This document shows positions 364-46,545 of a stretch of DNA of 64,000 bases, piece by piece; the stretch's first letter is position 1, and each line of letters begins with the position of its first letter. Location: the sequence record OZ240615.1. One strand, written 5' to 3'. The notes below the pieces were generated by a model, which worked only from the letters and a program-made list of their open reading frames with translations, did not search any database and was not told the DNA's origin. The position numbers and the translations under genes were made by a program.

Positions 364-960
364 TCAACTTAAATGCTTAATTGCGAGATCAAACATTTTT
401 TGCTTTACATCATCGAACCCGTAAAGGCGTTGATAGGCGGTTTGGTTTTGATTCCAAAGTTTGTCCATTAAGAAGACATTGCTCACTTCAGAAGCGTCAG
501 TACCGCCCCAATGCGGATTATCATCAAAGAGATAATAATCATACCCTTTTAAGTTGGCGTCTAACCAAGTCTTTTTACAGGGGACTTTCTCAGGGTCTAA
601 GAAGACCCCTTCCATTTCAACGCCAAGGCGGTCAAACTGCCGCTGCGTAAATTCAGCAGCGCGAGGGTGATACCCGCGGTGCGTAGCGAACATCGTTTGT
701 AGGCGCGCTCCAAAGACCGTTTGCATTTCTTTAATCAAAGCAGGAAGAGCTTCAAAACCAGGCACCCAGTCCGCGTGTTCCATGAACGAACCGTCTTCTA
801 AAACCGCCTTGAGGAAAGGAGCCTCAAACGGATCCGTACGCGAAAGTCGATTTTTCCAAACCAGCCCGCAGTTAAACGTATCGTTAATCCAGCGTGTCAT
901 GGCTTTTTCGGTTTCAAACTTGGTGTCATCCAAGTCAAACACGAACATTACTTTTTTCAC
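364..960 (-). CDS. HAD-superfamily phosphatase (5'-nucleotidase-like)
   Basis: N-terminal FVFDLDDT (DxD motif I), ATHRG motif II, LFDDN motif IV. Confidence 0.7.
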   Translation of the reverse strand: MKKVMFVFDLDDTKFETEKAMTRWINDTFNCGLVWKNRLSRTDPFEAPFLKAVLEDGSFMEHADWVPGFEALPALIKEMQTVFGARLQTMFATHRGYHPRAAEFTQRQFDRLGVEMEGVFLDPEKVPCKKTWLDANLKGYDYYLFDDNPHWGGTDASEVSNVFLMDKLWNQNQTAYQRLYGFDDVKQKMFDLAIKHLS

Positions 961-4146: not shown

Positions 4147-4175
4147 TTCCTTTTGTGATGATTACAACGAAAAAA

Positions 4176-4195
4176 GAGGGTGACTACTCACCCTC
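4176..4195 (-). terminator. Intrinsic terminator downstream of the 60-aa NrdA-tail-like gene
   Basis: GAGGGTGA-CTAC-TCACCCTC with A-tract 4170-4175. Confidence 0.7.
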
Positions 4196-4203
4196 GAAAT
4201 AAT

Positions 4204-4386
4204 TTAAATTTTACAAGCCCCGCCTTCACAGTCATCGCTAGCTTCGATTTCCGGTTGGGCTTCGATGAATGCTTCGTTCTTTGCCGTCGCTGCTTCAACT
4301 TCTGCATCGCTGAGCGTAAATGAGTCAAAGTCGAGACTCTCATCTTTGGTACCGCTGAAATGGGTACCGGGAACAGGTTGTGCCAT
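4204..4386 (-). CDS. 60-aa acidic peptide ending in an NrdA-like redox tail (DDCEGGACKI)
   Basis: AAAAGGA SD; C-terminus matches E. coli NrdA C-terminus (DDGCESGACKI), same CX4C-KI-stop layout. Confidence 0.75.
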   Translation of the reverse strand: MAQPVPGTHFSGTKDESLDFDSFTLSDAEVEAATAKNEAFIEAQPEIEASDDCEGGACKI

Positions 4387-4464
4387 TAGAACTTTTCCTT
4401 TTTTAATCCGAGACGTAATGCCTCAAAGAAAGACAAGTAAGACTTAAAAAAGAAAAAGACCCAG

Positions 4465-4495
4465 AGGCATAGAGGGTTACAAGCCCTCTATGCCT
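4465..4495 (-). terminator. Intrinsic terminator upstream of the 60-aa gene
   Basis: AGGCATAGAGGG-N7-CCCTCTATGCCT with A-rich tract to the left. Confidence 0.7.
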
Positions 4496-4504
4496 TCTTT
4501 GAGA

Positions 4505-4975
4505 TCAATCAAGGTAAAAACATTTCCCGCCTTTGTTCTCCGCTACTAATTTTTTCAGTCCGTTAGTAGAGAAGATCACGTAGGCATCCGGGTGACCCTC
4601 AACGTACAGTTTGAAATTTTTCGCTTTGGTTACCTTAACGGTGTCGAAGAACGCACGCCAGTTACTGGATCCAACTCTAGAGAGGGGGGTAATCATCTGG
4701 TACTTATCCCCATCTATGTCAATAACCAACGTATAACGGTCATCGATAGTAGAAAGAGATTGCCCTTTCGCATCGGTCAGGAAAAGCGCCTGTTCTGGCC
4801 AGTTGTCACCGGTATCGCGACACGAGAACGCCAGCGAATAACCGTCTGTGCTTTCGGTATAAAATTCAAGGGTTCCTTGCTGATACGACTCTGTCCAGCG
4901 ATTCACAACAGCTTGTGAGGCGAAGGACATAAACGCAGAAAGAACCACCAGTGTTGCAGCGATAAATTTTTTCAT
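4505..4975 (-). CDS. exported protein with signal peptide
   Basis: MKKFIAATLVVLSAFMSFASQA signal peptide; AAAAGGT SD. Confidence 0.75.
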   Translation of the reverse strand: MKKFIAATLVVLSAFMSFASQAVVNRWTESYQQGTLEFYTESTDGYSLAFSCRDTGDNWPEQALFLTDAKGQSLSTIDDRYTLVIDIDGDKYQMITPLSRVGSSNWRAFFDTVKVTKAKNFKLYVEGHPDAYVIFSTNGLKKLVAENKGGKCFYLD

Positions 4976-9156: not shown

Positions 9157-10125
9157 TCACGGATGTGACTCATCTTTGCTTAAACTTTTTAAATCAGCAT
9201 TAGGATCGATATTTGTTTTAATCCACCCTAACATTTCTTCAGTTAAATTAAACCATTCCGTAGAACCTCCGTATCCGGGTATATTCCAACCGGCATTATT
9301 GGGTGAGAATGAATCTTTAAACTCTTTTTCTAATTTTGCAGCTTTATACCCATCTTTGAACAAACAATGAGTGAAAAGGAAAGAATTGAAACCTAAATGT
9401 TTTGCAGCAGCCGCAGAAAGTAAAGCACGAATACGGTGAAGAAGATTCTTAGTAACACCGACTTTTATAAATTTAAAGTCATCGCTAACTAGAAAATAAA
9501 CCGACATCGGAAACATTCTACTGAAAAAGCCTCCGCAGGTAGGACAACCGCTTTTATCGTATAGGTGGGTAGCCGGTCGTTGTAAAAATTTACCATGGTC
9601 TTTACAAATTATTACGACATCTTTAGCTATGTTGATATAATCAACAAGCGAATAGTCGTAACGATCTCCGTGAATATTCCTGGCACTCTCAATAAATTGT
9701 GCCGTAGTCATTCTCAAAGTATCATGAATGCACTTCGAGCAACCACGTTGTTTAATTCCCAGATGATTTCCTGGTGACTGTTGAAACTCACCATGTACTT
9801 TACAAATTATAGTGACGGGATGATGTACACCGACATAAATACTTTTACTATAATCGTACCGATCGCCATGGATTTCCTTAGCCTCAAGAATAAATTCTTC
9901 GGTAGTTTTAGTCGTAGCTTTGCGATGTCTTTCTTTACCGCATTTAGGACAACTCTGTCCCTCTAAATGTTTTCTTGCTTTTTGTTCAAATTCACCATGT
10001 ACCGGACAAATTATTTTAATAACCCCATTAGAGCCGGTATAGATTACTTTTGAATAATTGTAAAAATCGCCGTGAATCAATTTAAATTTCTCTAATACTT
10101 TCTCCGTTTTAATTATTTTACTCAT
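9157..10125 (-). CDS. Putative homing endonuclease: zinc-finger repeats (CxxHG...HxxGxGCxxC) plus GIY-YIG/T5orf172-like C-terminal domain
   Basis: Three repeats such as YSKSIYVGVHHPVTIICKVHGEFQQSPGNHL...GCSKC; C-terminal SVYFL...IKVGVT...EKEF...GSTEWF. Start revised to MSKIIK because the longer start lies inside a terminator. Confidence 0.75.
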   Translation of the reverse strand: MSKIIKTEKVLEKFKLIHGDFYNYSKVIYTGSNGVIKIICPVHGEFEQKARKHLEGQSCPKCGKERHRKATTKTTEEFILEAKEIHGDRYDYSKSIYVGVHHPVTIICKVHGEFQQSPGNHLGIKQRGCSKCIHDTLRMTTAQFIESARNIHGDRYDYSLVDYINIAKDVVIICKDHGKFLQRPATHLYDKSGCPTCGGFFSRMFPMSVYFLVSDDFKFIKVGVTKNLLHRIRALLSAAAAKHLGFNSFLFTHCLFKDGYKAAKLEKEFKDSFSPNNAGWNIPGYGGSTEWFNLTEEMLGWIKTNIDPNADLKSLSKDESHP

Positions 10126-10157
10126 TTTCCACCATAGTGTAGCAATTAGAAGATAGA

Positions 10158-10187
10158 AGAGTGTGACGAGCTTCCCCGTCACACTCT
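10158..10187 (-). terminator. Stem-loop/terminator after the exported-protein trio
   Basis: AGAGTGTGACG-N8-CGTCACACTCT. Confidence 0.65.
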
Positions 10188-15998: not shown

Positions 15999-17273
15999 TT
16001 ACGCCGGATCCGGGTTAGGGATATTGACGTCACTGATACCCACCGCTACATCGGGATTAGGTTCAACGCTGTCATTTTGCTTCCTTTCGATTCGTAATTT
16101 CTCGGGGTGTTTCAGATTAAAACGACGCCGCATTTGGTAGAGATAATTGTTATCGTCGTCATCGCCGATAAATTTGATTTCATACCCAACCCGGTCAAAA
16201 TAACTGTAGGTATCAGAGCGACTGTTTTTACGTTCTAATCCAACAACGACTTTCCCTTTAAACCGCTTATAGTCTTCCGTCCAACTCTGGAAATGTTTTG
16301 TTGGGAAACAGGGCGTTGAGAAGCTGATCTCGTAAACGGCTCCTCTGAACCAGGTCAGTTTATCATCAATAAGTTGAGCGTCATTAGGGATCAACGCGAT
16401 CAACCGCATCAACGGGTAAATAAGGTCTCGATGGATTGTTTCTCCTCGAAACTCACCACCAACCCTGACGATCTCTTCCCCGTTATCGTAGCCATCGGAC
16501 CAGGTTGCGTTATCAAGGCTCCTGATCGCTTTCTGCCGAGCCTTTGAATCGAATTGACCCATCAGCTTAATGTAATGAAGAAACGTCTCTGTGAGCGTAT
16601 CACAGAGTGTAGGGTCGATGAAAAACGATTCCGGTCGGATGTAATTTCCTTCAACGAAACCCGCTCCGGAACGAAGATACCTCAACTCAATAAACACTTC
16701 GGCGTGCTGCGGGTTAATTTCAATAGTTGCTGCGTTGTCGAGATAAAAATGTTTCTCCGGTTTATCGGGCTCACTCCACGGGAAGGTAATTTCGGTAGAG
16801 GAATAATAGTTGTGATAACCAATAAACTCGCCACTAAAATTACTCGGGTGGTAAAATACCCGACCGTCGTTATAACGCGCTATTCCGTCGTCGTCTAAAA
16901 ACAGCGCACCACAACGCTTATTTTGTTTATTCCCATACCCGTGATCAACCCACTCTTCCGGTTCCCCTGTCAACGGAGTCAGCGGAGAAAAGCTGAGCAG
17001 TTTGATAAGAATATCCAACACCCGGGTACGTTCAGTTGTCTCGTCAATGCGAGAAAATAATAACTGACTGAATCCGTAAAGGAGAGAATCTTTATCTTCG
17101 ATAGGGGAAAGGTTTTCTTTCCAATGACGCATGGAACCAATTAAACAACTAGCACTTCCGCCGGAGTGACCCTGCCCGTCCCAGATCTCGTAACACTCTC
17201 TTAAGAGGTCACAGGTTTCCGCGTCTAATTTGGCGAAAATGAATTCCACTTCGAAATGACTTTTCAAACTCAT
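15999..17273 (-). CDS. conserved phage hypothetical protein
   Basis: QGHSGGSA...PLTPLTGEPEEW...QNKRC motif seen in phage proteins of unknown function. Confidence 0.6.
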   Translation of the reverse strand: MSLKSHFEVEFIFAKLDAETCDLLRECYEIWDGQGHSGGSASCLIGSMRHWKENLSPIEDKDSLLYGFSQLLFSRIDETTERTRVLDILIKLLSFSPLTPLTGEPEEWVDHGYGNKQNKRCGALFLDDDGIARYNDGRVFYHPSNFSGEFIGYHNYYSSTEITFPWSEPDKPEKHFYLDNAATIEINPQHAEVFIELRYLRSGAGFVEGNYIRPESFFIDPTLCDTLTETFLHYIKLMGQFDSKARQKAIRSLDNATWSDGYDNGEEIVRVGGEFRGETIHRDLIYPLMRLIALIPNDAQLIDDKLTWFRGAVYEISFSTPCFPTKHFQSWTEDYKRFKGKVVVGLERKNSRSDTYSYFDRVGYEIKFIGDDDDNNYLYQMRRRFNLKHPEKLRIERKQNDSVEPNPDVAVGISDVNIPNPDPA

Positions 17274-17461: not shown

Positions 17462-18757
17462 ATGAAACATACACGTAATGTTCTTAAGGCGCTCGCATCA
17501 AAACCTTCTTTAGAGGCCCAGGCTTTCGAGGCTTTACAGGAAGGTCAGAGTGCTGATCTCAGTTTCCTGGCACTGGAAGCTTATGAACTCACCGATGAGG
17601 TCACCGAGCAGCTCGACGAAGCCGGTGAACTGGAAGAGAAAACAGAACGCGGTGAAGTACTCAAAGATTTCATCCAATCCGAAATTGCTAATGACGACCG
17701 CGTAGCGACCCCTAACGAAATCGCTTTAATCGAGCAAGCCACCGACGCGGTTGTTGACGGCACTGGTGAGACGGTTGAAACCGTCATCCCATCTCTGGAG
17801 TCGTTTGAAGTGAAAGGCGCCGCTGCACCGTCATTGGAAGCGTTAGGTGGGACAATTTCCGACTTCGCAAAAGGCGCGATCCAACTGGTTAAGAACGCAG
17901 GTGATTCTTTTAAGAAGTACCTCAAAGGTCTGTTCTCTCGTCTTGAGGCTTTGAAGAACTTAATCAATGACGTTGAGAAGCAAGCCGCCAGCGCAGAGTT
18001 TGCTGAATCAGTTGACGTCTCAGCCGCACTTTCGGTTTCCGCTGCTTGGGACGATAACAGCTTTGCCTCCACATTCGATAAAGCCATTTCCGGAATGGAA
18101 GTAATCGCGAAGAAAACTACCGAACTGTCCGGTCCCTACGCTCAGAAACTGCTGACTAAACACGACGAGTTTGTCAACCTGGTTCAGAAAACGTTTGACG
18201 GGGCATTAGGGCGCAGCGATAAAAAATCCCTCGAGCGTTCCGATCTGGCGAAGAAATTTATCAACAACGCCGAAGCACTGGCTGCGTTGTTCCAGGGTAG
18301 CCTTTCTGACGGAAAAGAGTTCGGCGGACTGTATGTCTCTAATGGCGAGAAATTAAAAAGTTCCGACGATTTCAGCGCTGTATCTAAATCGATCGTTAAA
18401 TGTGTACCGCAGGTTTTCCGTGCTGGTAATGTCGATGGTCGTTCCTTCACCATGACCGGCGTGAACAAAGAGTCTGTACGTCGCCTGTGTTCGATTCTGA
18501 AGAACTCTACCGGCAGCCTGTCCAGAACTAAAGCAACCGGCACTATGTTTAATGTCGATTTCTTTACGACGCAGAACGATTTTGGTTTAGTGAGTTCAAT
18601 CGTCTTTGGTATCAGCTCCACTCAATTCCAGATGGCGATTAACCGCGTGAACCGCGCGTACATTTCCGGCTATACTCGCCCGTTGATGCAGTACATCAAC
18701 CACTACTTCCGTGTAGCGGAAGCGCAGCTGGCGATCGCCAAAAAAGCCATGAAATAA
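17462..18757 (+). CDS. virion inner-head protein, phiKZ/SPN3US multi-copy head-protein type
   Basis: Acidic propeptide with repeated SLE/ALE/AFE motifs (prohead protease S/A-x-E sites) followed by a helical region. Confidence 0.75.
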   Translation: MKHTRNVLKALASKPSLEAQAFEALQEGQSADLSFLALEAYELTDEVTEQLDEAGELEEKTERGEVLKDFIQSEIANDDRVATPNEIALIEQATDAVVDGTGETVETVIPSLESFEVKGAAAPSLEALGGTISDFAKGAIQLVKNAGDSFKKYLKGLFSRLEALKNLINDVEKQAASAEFAESVDVSAALSVSAAWDDNSFASTFDKAISGMEVIAKKTTELSGPYAQKLLTKHDEFVNLVQKTFDGALGRSDKKSLERSDLAKKFINNAEALAALFQGSLSDGKEFGGLYVSNGEKLKSSDDFSAVSKSIVKCVPQVFRAGNVDGRSFTMTGVNKESVRRLCSILKNSTGSLSRTKATGTMFNVDFFTTQNDFGLVSSIVFGISSTQFQMAINRVNRAYISGYTRPLMQYINHYFRVAEAQLAIAKKAMK

Positions 18758-41058: not shown

Positions 41059-42816
41059 TCAAATCCATTGTGCCGCACGATCACGGAGAGTACGGATACT
41101 TTCCAGAATCTTTACGTCGCCGTTCAGGTAGACTGTGCGCATCGCGTCTCGCTCACTTCCGCGCAACGTTTCGTACTGCTCCCGAGTCAGATCGTCTTTC
41201 AGTGTTAACGTTCCGTCGTCTTCACGATAGACAATCAGATACCCTTTTGCTGACTTCTTAGTACCATCGTCAGTTTTAGGGTTCTTCGCGATGTTGTAGT
41301 GTTTACCGTTGACTTTCCCAGCAGTCGCCTTCATGGCGATACCCAGAGTGTCACGAGTCACGAATTGGAACTCGAAACTCCCTACGCCAAAGACAACGTT
41401 AGAACTACAGAACCCATTCGCTTTCAAACGAGAAAGGATCCGTGTCATGGTGTTGATGTTGATCGCATCGCCATAGATCAAACCGACGTGCGGATCCAGT
41501 TCTTTATACCCAGCGGCATTTGTGGTTCCGCCGAAGATTTCCCAGAGTATCTGTACTGCACCCTTCTGCTCTTCGATAGAAATAGGTTTCCCTGTTTTAG
41601 TCGAATAGAATTGACCATCAACACAGAAAGATTCGAAATTACCAGACGTAGCATTTTGAATCGCGACAAATTTCGTAGCATCTAAAGCAGAAGCTCCCCC
41701 TAAAACGGTCATCTCTTGGGAATTGTGATTATCGCCGTCCCAGGTGTATCCACAAAGGATATGGTACGGATTCCCGGAATCCGGGCGATACACCAGTTTA
41801 CCATCGCGCGCCATAATCGCATCTTTGTTTGCAATGGCCTTGGTGGTGATGGTGTCAAAGAAGTCATTCGTATCACTGACGAAGCTGAAAACACCAGAAG
41901 GGTAAACTTCCGTGATCAGGCGTCGTTGGAATAATTCCTCCGCCTTCGAGAGTAACTCCGCTTCTGTGACATTAGCATATTCAGGGGTCGCCTTCAGTTC
42001 CTCTGCGTAAACCGCAATATTCAGACAGGTTACGCTGTGTTCTGTGGCTGGAACACTACCAGCGATTTCCGAGACCGATACGTCGCCTTCCGGATTATAG
42101 AAGCGATTCGCGGTCCAGACAGAAGGGAAGCTATCACTCCCTTTGAAATAGATCAACTGACCTACCGAGCTGTTCGCATCGTCAAACATCCCCGACATTC
42201 CACGTAACGCGAAGTTATGCGCCTGGTAGTCAATGAACGCTTGCGCCGCCCCTGTCTCGTTAGCGTACTGCTCCAGTACACGGCGGAAGTGTAACGCTTT
42301 CGTTGCCAGTACGCACGGTTTCCAGAGTTCGTTACTCCAGAGGTCTTCGAAGTAACCGGTCAGCCACCCAAAGCCGTCGACAGTGTTTTCAATCGTCAGG
42401 AATGGAACACGAATAGGGACTAATGACCCCTCCGGTACCGCACGAATTTCGAGCGGGATATAGCCCAGTTCGTGCAGCTCTTTCAGATGCGCCGATTTCA
42501 CCACGCCTTTACCCAGAACCCCGTCCATGTATTCGAGGTATTCAGCCTCTACCTGATTAAACGGCGTTTTGAAGAAGTTATCAAAACTCCCTACCAGCCA
42601 GCGGAGCACTAAACGCTGCAGACCCATGAATACCGAACCGTCAAAGTCCAGTGGGGTATTGAAGTACGTGTGACTTCTGGCCGTCAGGTTTTCAAAGAAG
42701 CTGTCGGTACCCAGCGGTTGTTGGTTGATGTGCCCGGTTTTATAGGCGTCACAGAGCAGGAATACCAGCGGATCTTCGGTATAGAATTTTGGGTCTTTCA
42801 GTAAAGGATTGGTCAT
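41059..42816 (-). CDS. nadV: nicotinamide phosphoribosyltransferase family (NadV-like; candidate Namat of NARP1)
   Basis: DAYKTGH, PATEHSV, VSDT, RPDSG, LIYGDAI, FGVGS, TRDT, KNPKTD...KKSAKG. Confidence 0.9.
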   Translation of the reverse strand: MTNPLLKDPKFYTEDPLVFLLCDAYKTGHINQQPLGTDSFFENLTARSHTYFNTPLDFDGSVFMGLQRLVLRWLVGSFDNFFKTPFNQVEAEYLEYMDGVLGKGVVKSAHLKELHELGYIPLEIRAVPEGSLVPIRVPFLTIENTVDGFGWLTGYFEDLWSNELWKPCVLATKALHFRRVLEQYANETGAAQAFIDYQAHNFALRGMSGMFDDANSSVGQLIYFKGSDSFPSVWTANRFYNPEGDVSVSEIAGSVPATEHSVTCLNIAVYAEELKATPEYANVTEAELLSKAEELFQRRLITEVYPSGVFSFVSDTNDFFDTITTKAIANKDAIMARDGKLVYRPDSGNPYHILCGYTWDGDNHNSQEMTVLGGASALDATKFVAIQNATSGNFESFCVDGQFYSTKTGKPISIEEQKGAVQILWEIFGGTTNAAGYKELDPHVGLIYGDAININTMTRILSRLKANGFCSSNVVFGVGSFEFQFVTRDTLGIAMKATAGKVNGKHYNIAKNPKTDDGTKKSAKGYLIVYREDDGTLTLKDDLTREQYETLRGSERDAMRTVYLNGDVKILESIRTLRDRAAQWI

Positions 42817-44355: not shown

Positions 44356-46452
44356 TTAAGAGAAGATCCAAGCGTTTCTGGTTGAATTCCAGATAAACTC
44401 ATAAGTCCCCGGTGCAGAAATTACAACGGACGTTAGTGATGCACCACCCGGTCCATAGATAGTAGCGATCGTAGAGTCTGCGTTTGCCGTAGGTGTAAAA
44501 GTGTAATTTCCTGCGGTTACCACCTTTTTAAATCGAATCACCTGACCGTTCGTTAATGAAGACGTTTGAGGTAAAGTGAATGCACTATCACTAGTATTAA
44601 TGGCGTAGTAACAATAAGCAATGTTTGTACTAGGAATAGCTGCACCGTTTGCAATTTCGGAGAAATTGATTTGAGGAGCAGACAGGCTATAGAGGAAAAG
44701 TCTTCCTTGATTCCAACCTATAAGGTTTGTGGGTGCTGCGTCGCCCGTCCCGCCCATTAGATTTGTAGGCGTGAGCTGAAGGCCGTTATACGTCTTGTAG
44801 TAAGTTTTGGCGGCGTATGTTACCGTTGTAGGTGTATAAGCAAAAGTCTGTACCGAATGCTTAAATCCGACCTGTAGACCATTTTGATCGAATCTAGAAG
44901 CCTCGGTATCAAAGTTGCTATAGGAAATTTCGGCACTGACACCTGCATTAGTTGTACCAAAATTACCATAGACATCATTCATCGATGACATGTTCAAAGA
45001 AGACGCAGTGCCTTCCCGGTAAATACAGTACGCTACACGTCTCTCGGTGAGGGTTCCGCCGTAATTGTAGTGGACATTATTAGCTTTAAAGTTAGTGATA
45101 CTTTTAGCAATGCGGATGTTAGCATACTTATTAGTAGTGACGTCATCGGAAGTGGCGCTTTGCCAACCATTAGCAAAGAATAAGTTATCTGTGCAGACAT
45201 GACCCTCAGTCCCGCCAGCGGTGTTAAAATAAATACCATTTTTACCGTTGGTATTAAAATGGTTTCGTGTGATTGCAGTTACAACCGCTAGAGGTCCTAA
45301 TGTTAAGCCATTTCCTTGGTTTTCGTAGCTCTCAGAGTTAGACATCCTGAAGGAGCCGCAGTTAGCGTATATCCCTTCCGCAGAAAGTGACCTGCCGAAC
45401 GAACAAGAGTCTAACAACCAATCTACCGCACTAGGAATGTACAAACATTGTAGACCGCAATAGAGGACAGACGAATAGTCGATACGGCCCATATTTCGGT
45501 TAGTCCCGGCATAAATCCCATAACCAGAATAATTACTGACGGTGCAACTTTCCATTTGGATAGAAGTCTGATACGAAGACTGATCATTAATCCAAATCGC
45601 ATTCAGCGCACCAAGGGTGGTAGGGGGCGTGGGAGAAACTCGACTTCCTACTGTTGTCCAGTCCCCGACTAAGTTCAAATTCTTAAATGTCGGCGCTAAA
45701 TAAGTTGCTACAGTAAAATGATTCCCTGTTGTCCCTGGGACGGGTGACAATTGAGTACTAGCGCGTTTACTGGTCCCACTTAAAGTCGTAGGTGCGTTTA
45801 AAACCAAGTTACCTGTCAAGTAAGTCGCGTTATCCCGAAATCTAACCTCTCCTTTTTTAGCGACATTAATCGCATTTTGAATAGCGTTAGTGTCGTCCGA
45901 CGAACCATCGCCTTTTGCCCCAAACCAATCAACGATATAAAAAGGGACGTCAACAATACGTTGCCAATAGTACCCGCTACCGGCCGCAATCACTCCGCCA
46001 TCATCGGTTTTAGTCCCTTTATACCCAACAAAGATGCCCCCGCCGATATTTGTTCCTTTATTCCAACCGAGAAGCGTCACTCGTTGTCCTTCGTAAACAA
46101 CAGGTAAGGTACGTAGCGTTGCAAAACCATCAACTTCTAAAACTAACTGGGTGGAAATACTTTGCTGTAATTTCCCGTAATAGTCAAAAGTAGCAAAAGA
46201 GTAATGGGTATCAACTAATAAATCTACAGAGTTACCATTGGCGTCTATCGGGTTACCTGTAGCTGACAACGCTATTGGTTGTGTTAATGCTACTACTGTC
46301 CCATCGCTTTTCCGTCCGGTAACAGTTAATCGATTAGCTGCGACCGTAGGGTCTGTCCCAGCAGCACCGATATAGAGTGTGCCATTCTTTGCTGGGCGAA
46401 ATCCATCAGCTAAAGAGAAGCTTGAATTCTGAGGTGAAACGATATTAGACAT
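44356..46452 (-). CDS. tailspike/depolymerase with P22-type N-terminal head-binding domain and beta-helix
   Basis: N-terminus (KNGTLYIGAAGTDP...LTQPIALSATG...HYSFATFD) resembles P22 gp9 head-binding domain; WFGAKGDGSSDDT; Asn-rich repeats; start revised to MSNIVS. Confidence 0.85.
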   Translation of the reverse strand: MSNIVSPQNSSFSLADGFRPAKNGTLYIGAAGTDPTVAANRLTVTGRKSDGTVVALTQPIALSATGNPIDANGNSVDLLVDTHYSFATFDYYGKLQQSISTQLVLEVDGFATLRTLPVVYEGQRVTLLGWNKGTNIGGGIFVGYKGTKTDDGGVIAAGSGYYWQRIVDVPFYIVDWFGAKGDGSSDDTNAIQNAINVAKKGEVRFRDNATYLTGNLVLNAPTTLSGTSKRASTQLSPVPGTTGNHFTVATYLAPTFKNLNLVGDWTTVGSRVSPTPPTTLGALNAIWINDQSSYQTSIQMESCTVSNYSGYGIYAGTNRNMGRIDYSSVLYCGLQCLYIPSAVDWLLDSCSFGRSLSAEGIYANCGSFRMSNSESYENQGNGLTLGPLAVVTAITRNHFNTNGKNGIYFNTAGGTEGHVCTDNLFFANGWQSATSDDVTTNKYANIRIAKSITNFKANNVHYNYGGTLTERRVAYCIYREGTASSLNMSSMNDVYGNFGTTNAGVSAEISYSNFDTEASRFDQNGLQVGFKHSVQTFAYTPTTVTYAAKTYYKTYNGLQLTPTNLMGGTGDAAPTNLIGWNQGRLFLYSLSAPQINFSEIANGAAIPSTNIAYCYYAINTSDSAFTLPQTSSLTNGQVIRFKKVVTAGNYTFTPTANADSTIATIYGPGGASLTSVVISAPGTYEFIWNSTRNAWIFS

Positions 46453-46545
46453 ATTGACTCTCTCTAATAGATAAAAGTTTACATACGAATCTTCGTAACC
46501 TTTTGAGAGAATCTTAAAAGTAATCAAAAAAAGAAGTAGTCATAG

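Follow-up and report, generated by a model that had tools for sequence, protein, structure and literature searches.

What could the redox tail of ribonucleotide reductase (RNR) be doing as a gene of its own in a phage that appears to have no RNR? The question is raised by a 60-residue peptide gene in a 64,000-nucleotide stretch of DNA, here called the window, which matches Klebsiella phage vB_KpM_Centimanus (OZ240615.1, 299,730 bp; about record positions 186,001-250,000) at 100% identity and phage FBKp24 at 98%. DNA precursors are made de novo by RNR alone, and re-reduction of the enzyme limits steady-state turnover of the E. coli RNR. This step involves the cysteines of the NrdA tail, which re-reduce the active-site disulfide and are then themselves reduced by thioredoxin (Trx) or glutaredoxin (Grx) (PMC4078304, PMC5704485, PMC9669993). 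Judged by its sequence, the peptide is a free-standing exact copy of a common class Ia NrdA redox tail and belongs to a widespread family; its tail very probably derives from the 3' end of an nrdA gene, and the family probably acts on the host supply of DNA building blocks.

The peptide gene and its likeness to the NrdA tail

The gene, its signals and the parts of the encoded peptide are located in the window as follows.

4204..4386, minus strand: peptide gene from the list of open reading frames (ORFs); ATG start, 60 residues, acidic, stop codon included
4396..4400, minus strand: Shine-Dalgarno sequence AAGGA, read from the sequence, 9 nt before the ATG
4166..4195, minus strand: intrinsic terminator after the stop codon; stem at 4176-4195 of 8 bp with a 4-nt loop, then a U run
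4446..4498, minus strand: upstream hairpin and U-rich stretch, the 11-bp GC-rich hairpin lying at 4463-4498; closes the gene at 4505..4975
4306..4344, minus strand: residues 15-27, DESLDFDSFTLSD, an acidic-aromatic motif in the N-terminal part; conserved in the family in addition to the tail
4258..4308, minus strand: central segment, residues 27-43, the only helix predicted by AlphaFold2; joins the two motifs
4207..4257, minus strand: NrdA-like tail, residues 44-60, with Cys53 at 4228-4230 and Cys58 at 4213-4215, then Lys-Ile-stop

The encoded peptide ends ...EASDDCEGGACKI-stop, its C-terminal letters being ...SDDCEGGACKI-stop. The gene is 100% identical in OZ240615.1 and 98% identical in MW394391.1, where it is called as a coding sequence; the Centimanus and FBKp24 records both label it 'hypothetical protein'. 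It matches no Pfam family (E <= 1) and no NCBIfam family, and its sole PHROG match is a weak end match to phrog_14561, to which no function is assigned. In the terminator scan and folding, the downstream terminator folds at -14.7 kcal/mol (z = -5.8), with none of 200 shuffles as stable, and the upstream hairpin at -22.9 kcal/mol (z = -3.3). As the latter closes the upstream gene, the peptide gene needs a promoter of its own at about 4401-4445. A scan of that interval gave no sigma-70-like match, which says little in a phage that encodes multisubunit RNA polymerases of its own. The peptide gene has the look of a separate, very short unit. An earlier reading made from the letters alone (the sequence-only reading) had described a 60-residue acidic gene with its own Shine-Dalgarno sequence, bracketed by two terminators, and the ORF list, the sequence and the folding bear out the gene, the Shine-Dalgarno sequence and a hairpin on each side; the coordinates it gave stand, while the strand differs from its wording, the gene lying on the minus strand.

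The sequence-only reading had also stated that E. coli NrdA ends ...DDGCESGACKI, and the E. coli K-12 nrdA sequence, fetched by accession and translated, has this very ending before its stop codon. The Cys-x4-Cys pair followed by Lys-Ile-stop is arranged as in the peptide, with 7 identities between the two over the last 8 residues. BLASTP aligns the peptide end with E. coli NrdA residues 747-761, to the last residue, with 10/16 identities; against the C-terminal end of Providencia NrdA the window peptide has 11/15 (E = 6e-6) and a homologue from a Miami phage 13/17 (E = 9e-7). A family profile built from 16 members was then searched against all 177,635 distinct PDB sequences and gave 12 matches at E <= 10, every one of them a class Ia NrdA chain aligned C-end to C-end; each match is weak alone (E = 0.15-3.1), and it is their exclusivity and end-anchoring that carry the evidence. 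The single window sequence, searched against the PDB, returned only a chance match, a dioxygenase. For a Neisseria member of the family the top PDB match is a free chain of 25 residues, chain B of 1QFN, which carries the name ribonucleoside-diphosphate reductase 1 and which we take to be the R1 (NrdA) C-terminal peptide bound to Grx; a free peptide with the NrdA tail would then be a redoxin substrate. BLASTP and the PDB profile search agree with the earlier identification of the peptide as a mimic of the NrdA redox tail that stands on its own.

The tail was further sought in bacteria, taking one genome per species and matching the last eight codons plus stop, which yielded at least 120 matches. 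The exact 8-residue tail ends at least 105 long NrdA-like ORFs (one per bacterial species), called NrdA from the sequence text upstream of the tail, and nrdB lies downstream of the NrdA-like ORF at 88 loci among the matches listed. The genera with the exact tail on NrdA include Proteus, Providencia, Morganella, Xenorhabdus, Photorhabdus and Yersinia, and further Pectobacterium, Brenneria, Gilliamella, Shewanella, Pseudoalteromonas, Moritella and others. As most class I RNRs have Cys-x-x-Cys (PMC9669993), the Cys-x4-Cys-Lys-Ile ending is lineage-specific and the match more telling. The RNR barrel domain (PF02867), the all-alpha domain and the ATP-cone are all absent from the 60-residue ORF; these domains are present in two NrdAs from viral contigs (L045 and L052), described below.

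AlphaFold2, run on a shallow alignment, gives one helix at residues 27-43 with a predicted local distance difference test score (pLDDT) of about 72-74 there and 51-59 elsewhere (mean 60.9), and both ends of the peptide are predicted to be disordered. A thioredoxin or glutaredoxin fold was not found in the peptide by Pfam, and its Cys-x4-Cys pair, as opposed to a Cys-x-x-Cys, sits in the disordered end. The DESLDFDSFTLSD block is conserved in two family alignments and may be a docking motif.

Family distribution and conservation

A search for homologues, which the sequence-only reading had proposed, found a large family with bacterial members. By tblastn the peptide is present in 51 GenBank phage records, the carriers including FBKp24-like and KpLz-2_45-like Klebsiella/Serratia jumbo phages, many Erwinia jumbo phages and Miami-like Klebsiella phages. 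Yersinia phage phiR1-37 carries the homologue g117 (L002:6010-6165) with an annotated ribosome-binding site and terminator, in Salmonella phage SA002 the module ends a 163-residue protein, and two carriers are small: Alcaligenes phage CASP1 (47 kb) and Vibrio phage 275E43-1 (48 kb, Zobellviridae). A word-indexed protein search returned only 3 close relatives. The full HMMER search of 1.8 billion representatives returned 13 matches, of which the real ones all have 43-60 residues; it added seven small proteins of 43-59 residues, whose tail variants include one Cys-x3-Cys, and an 11-residue match is too short for NrdA itself to reach significance among 1.8 billion sequences. The family is spread over phrog_14561, 24014, 38753, 10239 and 20277, none with an assigned function, and no plasmid copies of the peptide were found.

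An exact scan for the tail in IMG/VR gave 32 loci, 23 of them small ORFs of 26-86 residues. Another 7 are larger proteins (80, 123, 130 and 263 residues) ending in the same module, and the remaining 2 are the true NrdAs mentioned above (L045 and L052), which have the same tail together with the Pfam RNR barrel domain. The 130-residue fusion protein bears an N4 gp49/Sf6 gp66 domain (PF13876), and the other fusion N-termini match no known family. The larger proteins that end in the module are located as follows.

L016:3701-4192: 163 residues
L035:1052-1843: 263 residues
L047:5787-6158: 123 residues
L054:1193-1585: 130 residues
L025:2501-2743: 80 residues

As an aside on the viral-contig NrdA at L052:1811-4621 (937 residues), a weak match to an intein-splicing domain was seen inside its barrel, below the Pfam cutoff (22 versus 35.8 bits).

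Conservation was counted over 15 members found by similarity and not by the tail pattern. The cysteine pair is conserved: the second cysteine (Cys58) is identical in 15/15 and the first (Cys53) in 14/15, the exception being the Cys-x3-Cys variant. The tail glycines are each identical in 14/15 and the Lys and Ile each in 12/15, and exactly two cysteines occur in all 16 tabulated peptides (that of the window plus the 15). Synonymous variation is seen across members at 8/8 tail codons. Conservation together with synonymous variation of the tail codons is indicative of selection on the protein, rather than of recent transfer or a dead fragment. The literature search found nothing on the tail strings, on tail mimics or on phage small proteins acting on host RNR, in line with the statement of the sequence-only reading that it knew of no described system of this kind.

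Absence of ribonucleotide reductase from the carriers

Centimanus is a nucleus-forming jumbo phage with a nuclear shell protein (chimallin) and the tubulin PhuZ, both encoded outside the window.

L012:1321-3222: chimallin gene
L012:11476-12444: PhuZ gene

Within the window, the peptide tail is all that tblastn with E. coli NrdA and NrdB detects, so that the earlier claim of no nrdA body adjacent to the gene or elsewhere in the window is upheld. The complete Centimanus genome, read in pieces that were never joined, has no NrdA, NrdB, YfaE, NrdD or NrdG by tblastn and no annotated RNR. NrdA, NrdB, NrdD and NrdG are likewise missing from the complete genomes of CASP1 and Vibrio phage 275E43-1, so that the complete carrier genomes examined (Centimanus, CASP1, 275E43-1) are without RNR in 3 of 3 cases, and neither nrdA nor nrdB was found in the flanks of about 40 peptide loci. 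Centimanus does encode thymidylate synthase, dUTPase and thymidylate kinase, and it therefore processes deoxynucleotides made by something else. According to a review, more than half of the genomes of jumbo phages share a conserved RNR beta-subunit gene cluster (PMC13282480); these carriers therefore belong to the minority without one. As for a redoxin partner from the phage, no ORF of at least 60 residues has a CGPC/CPYC-type motif, save a CPHC in an RNA-polymerase beta-subunit gene.

Copies on bacterial chromosomes

Free-standing ORFs number 15 among the bacterial matches listed (at least 120), and the bacterial chromosomes with the peptide are those of Neisseria, Moraxella and Thalassolituus. 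In Neisseria a 42-residue gene lies between iscS and iscU in 11/11 Neisseria loci among the matches listed, the order being iscR-iscS-(variable ORF)-peptide-iscU-iscA-hscB with the peptide directly upstream of iscU. The gene is flanked by DNA-uptake-sequence hairpins. The 90% identity cluster of the Neisseria peptide has 229 members, and single member sequences occur on at least about 1000 contigs. One UniRef entry names this peptide 'FxLD family lantipeptide', a name that NCBIfam does not reproduce. The other two copies follow flavin redox genes: that of Moraxella caprae is directly downstream of an Old-Yellow-Enzyme-type flavin oxidoreductase, and that of Thalassolituus directly downstream of a flavodoxin/FAD/NAD diflavin reductase.

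L097:888-1013, minus strand: Neisseria copy
L129:6789-6917, minus strand: Neisseria copy, to which nine further loci are to be added
L133:about 375-560, minus strand: Moraxella caprae copy
L125:1759-1998, plus strand: Thalassolituus copy

The same isc arrangement is also found in a misassigned contig and in the IMG/VR contig L039 (IMGVR_UViG_2541047228_000006). This latter is a 45-kb 'viral' contig, of which at least the isc part looks like bacterial chromosome.

The N-terminal block and the NrdB tail

The NrdB ends collected from 88 bacteria are acidic and finish in aromatic-x-Leu, for example ...DDLSDFEL and ...DDFGDFDL, that of E. coli being ...DDLSNFQL. Near-identical strings are present in the N-terminal blocks of the peptides: FDDFEL (L030), IDDFEL (P0009) and IEDFDL (CASP1), the first being a near-exact match to NrdB ends such as ...DDFDDFEL. 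Scored against composition-preserving shuffles, 10/23 members reach p < 0.05 with a 6-residue NrdB-end profile and 8/23 with an 8-residue profile, and the window peptide has p of about 0.02; in these tests the members are related to each other and the hypothesis was formed after looking (post hoc). The NrdB-like block is internal in the peptide, not C-terminal as in NrdB, and NrdB was not among the results when the PDB was searched with the N-terminal profile, which gave only designed coiled coils that matched the helix. That the N-terminal block mimics the NrdB tail may be taken as a lead only.

Proposed function and alternatives

Because the phage has no reductase of its own, the peptide would act in trans on the host enzyme. 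The reading preferred here, plausible though still somewhat doubtful, is that of a surrogate tail which is recharged by Grx or Trx, docks on host NrdA and adds reducing capacity. Host Grx or Trx would keep the peptide reduced; the peptide would dock on host NrdA, possibly via the N-terminal acidic-aromatic motif, deliver its dithiol to the oxidised NrdA active site and depart as a disulfide, to be recharged in turn. Extra diffusible tails would raise the reducing capacity at the re-reduction step and thereby yield more deoxynucleoside diphosphates for a 300-kb genome, and the cost of such a strategy would be one 183-bp gene. For this we infer that the peptide is present in useful amounts, is reduced by Grx or Trx and can reach the NrdA active site, and that the net outcome is stimulation, not inhibition. 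A booster, one of the options of the sequence-only reading, is favoured because the carriers depend on the host enzyme, because both cysteines and the NrdA-like ending are conserved, which a mere plug would not need, and because a free tail has no tether, a role that the second conserved block could fill.

Several points weigh against a surrogate tail acting on the host enzyme. A free peptide must compete with the tethered native tail of NrdA, and a genuine mimicry of the NrdB tail by the N-terminal motif would set the peptide against NrdB in binding NrdA, which points to inhibition. The tail of E. coli NrdA differs from that of the peptide by one residue, Ser versus Gly. That the tail was simply copied from the current host was also considered and is unsupported, as the CASP1-type ending has an exact match in none of 185,579 bacterial species genomes. 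The bacterial copies adjoin iron-sulfur (Fe-S) and flavin redox genes, not nrd genes. A class II RNR is ruled out only by annotation and by the lack of NrdA similarity, no query of its own having been run. Lastly, in a published RNA-seq table phiR1-37 g117 has values of 3.9, 1.5 and 1.2, with its neighbours at hundreds to tens of thousands. The small neighbour g116 is also near zero in these data, and a host-type 'Sigma promoter' is marked before g117. The phiR1-37 RNA was column-purified; short transcripts can be lost with kits of this type, so that the count for a monocistronic transcript of ~250 nt may be too low.

The two conserved blocks can also be read as parts of one device, a disordered peptide, encoded by RNR-less phages and some bacteria and made of an NrdA-tail copy and an NrdB-tail mimic, that plugs into host class Ia RNR and tunes its turnover, which we regard as possible but on the doubtful side. 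An outright blocker or decoy, another option of the sequence-only reading, is unlikely: comparable to Sml1, it would occupy the sites of the native NrdA tail, perhaps the NrdB-tail groove as well, or soak up Grx and Trx, and would lower host RNR activity to arrest host replication, acting in the bacterial copies as a brake. Small-subunit C-terminal peptides inhibit class I RNRs, yeast has small disordered protein inhibitors of RNR, and two weak linear motifs with a linker are the layout of a bivalent inhibitor, the resemblance of the N-terminal motif to the NrdB C-terminus (10/23 members at p < 0.05) being in keeping with it. However, NrdB was not returned by the unbiased N-terminal profile search of the PDB, the linker between the motifs is only 2 residues long in the fusion L054, which could hardly span two distant sites, and a faithful copy with conserved cysteines and an NrdA-like ending would act as a reductant, not a trap. 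Carriers without RNR, moreover, appear to depend on the host enzyme, and ~5 Mb of host DNA would supply < 20 genomes of 300 kb. Somewhat less probable again is a dithiol peptide coupled to redoxins with a target other than RNR, in which the NrdA-like end would be a Grx or Trx handle only and the N-terminal motif would direct the peptide to, for example, IscS/IscU Fe-S assembly or flavoenzymes. The position of the Neisseria gene inside the isc operon (11/11 loci among the matches listed) and the flavin redox genes that precede the Moraxella caprae and Thalassolituus copies agree with such a role, as does the apparent portability of the module, which is fused to unrelated N-terminal domains (PF13876; proteins of 80, 123, 163 and 263 residues). 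Three bacterial contexts are anecdotal, however, and the Neisseria synteny may be inherited, not functional; the phage copies have no Fe-S or flavin neighbours, and the match to NrdA over 15-17 residues, beyond the surroundings of the cysteines, would be left unexplained.

The remaining alternatives have little to recommend them. The sequence-only reading had suggested a split RNR, in which the peptide would serve in trans as the tail of a tailless phage NrdA encoded elsewhere, in the manner of class II NrdJa and NrdJb; nrdJb of Pseudomonas is indeed a separate gene for an RNR C-terminal redox module (PMC5704485). Whole-genome tblastn finds no nrdA, and the suggestion was rejected on the lack of NrdA, NrdB, NrdD and NrdG from the 299,730-bp genome, from CASP1 and from 275E43-1; the two viral NrdAs found carry their own complete tail and the flanks of about 40 peptide loci are without RNR, leaving this reading with next to no credence. 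Very improbable too is the precursor of a ribosomally synthesized and post-translationally modified peptide (RiPP), with an acidic leader bearing an F-x-L-D-like box and a cysteine-containing C-terminal core. In its size, its acidic N-terminal part and its F-x-L-(S/P)-(D/E) block the peptide is superficially leader-like, and the lantipeptide name of one UniRef entry points the same way, but this candidate was rejected when 10/10 members gave no NCBIfam model match, even at E <= 10. Ser and Thr are not conserved in the would-be core, several members having none in the last 17 residues, no modifying enzyme or lanthipeptide synthetase adjoins the gene in the phage or bacterial loci inspected, and the identity of 8/8 to 13/17 with NrdA ends would go unexplained. 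That the gene is a chance ORF, or a relic without function of an nrdA 3' end once captured, is given an equally small probability, although the tail very probably does come from an nrdA 3' end and the transcript counts of the phiR1-37 homologue are near zero. The sequence-only reading had itself considered a broken remnant of nrdA; no nrdA-like sequence lies upstream, and the small ORF is conserved across unrelated phage lineages. It is found intact, with its own Shine-Dalgarno sequence and terminator, in unrelated phage groups and a whole bacterial genus, the eight tail codons change synonymously with the amino acids unchanged, and a second conserved block lies outside the tail.

Comparison with known systems

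The closest likeness is to the NrdA tail itself, which has the same Cys-x4-Cys-Lys-Ile-stop end, 8/8 in many gammaproteobacterial NrdAs; the peptide is also acidic and predicted to be disordered, but differs in having no RNR body and in adding an N-terminal motif and a helix that NrdA lacks. In GrcA/YfiD and phage T4 Y06I, the C-terminal catalytic module of a host enzyme is likewise copied as a free-standing glycyl-radical 'spare part'; these proteins differ from the peptide in serving pyruvate formate-lyase with a folded domain and radical chemistry, and have no sequence relationship to it. Cyanophage CP12 is a small disordered phage protein with redox-sensitive cysteine pairs that is presumed to steer host metabolism toward deoxynucleotide supply, but it acts on Calvin-cycle enzymes and is homologous to a host protein over its whole length, whereas the peptide copies only the tail of an enzyme. 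One paper speaks of host-like cyanophage genes as redirecting metabolism toward deoxynucleoside triphosphate (dNTP) synthesis (PMC4103541).

NrdJb, from the split class II RNR, is likewise a separate gene for an RNR redox module (PMC5704485). It differs in being a folded zinc-finger domain of 150-220 residues with six cysteines, encoded beside its own catalytic subunit, and no sequence similarity to the class I tail is reported (PMC5704485); the peptide, by comparison, has 60 residues, two cysteines and one predicted helix, with no partner subunit in the genome. Should the peptide be inhibitory, yeast Sml1 and its kin would be a possible analogue, being small, disordered and thought to act at the tail site of the large subunit; the peptide has no Pfam family match, however, and Sml1-type regulators are eukaryotic. 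To our knowledge these regulators do not copy the cysteine tail itself. The peptide is a member of none of the NrdJb, Sml1 and GrcA/Y06I precedents.

Other genes of the window and the genome

Further genes were noted in passing in the window and elsewhere in the Centimanus record. A phiKZ-like internal head protein fits with the chimallin and PhuZ genes, and the nicotinamide/nicotinate phosphoribosyltransferase of the window forms a phage NAD salvage set with NadR and PnuC, which are annotated at OZ240615.1 272599-274961. The tailspike-like protein is probably one of the capsule depolymerases.

9157-10182, minus strand: 341 residues with GIY-YIG/T5orf172 and DUF723/treble-clef zinc-finger repeats; probably a homing-endonuclease-like gene
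15999-17273, minus strand: 424-residue protein with an N-terminal match (E = 2.9e-27) to Tad3 of Pfam, an inhibitor of type I Thoeris
17462-18757, plus strand: phiKZ-like internal head protein (PF12699)
41059-42816, minus strand: nicotinamide/nicotinate phosphoribosyltransferase
44356-46527, minus strand: tailspike-like protein with a P22-type head-binding domain and a right-handed beta-helix (pectate-lyase-like)
L011:21400-21483 (OZ240615.1 121400-121483): one of the phage tRNA genes, annotated 'tRNA-Stop(tta)' and possibly suppressor-like

Significance

As the NrdA tail is disordered in structures, its re-reduction is among the least accessible steps of RNR, and a copy of the tail that stands alone and has been optimised by evolution would be of use in tracing tail docking and recognition by Grx and Trx. 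Annotation pipelines cannot see the family, which has no Pfam or NCBIfam model and is split over at least five PHROGs. The place of the Neisseria copy within the isc operon is a hint of a tie between Fe-S or iron status and the redox relay.

If the peptide does inhibit, it would be the first case in the bacterial world of regulation comparable to that by Sml1, and would offer a natural model on which to base peptide ligands of enterobacterial RNR. The two-motif reading, if true, would make it the first small-protein regulator or cofactor of bacterial RNR, and the family a new minimal class of viral metabolic gene built from an enzyme's own tails. The surrogate-tail reading, if true, would explain how large phages that lack RNR secure their dNTPs, and would add a new kind of auxiliary metabolic gene, in which a 180-bp gene replaces a 3.4-kb operon.

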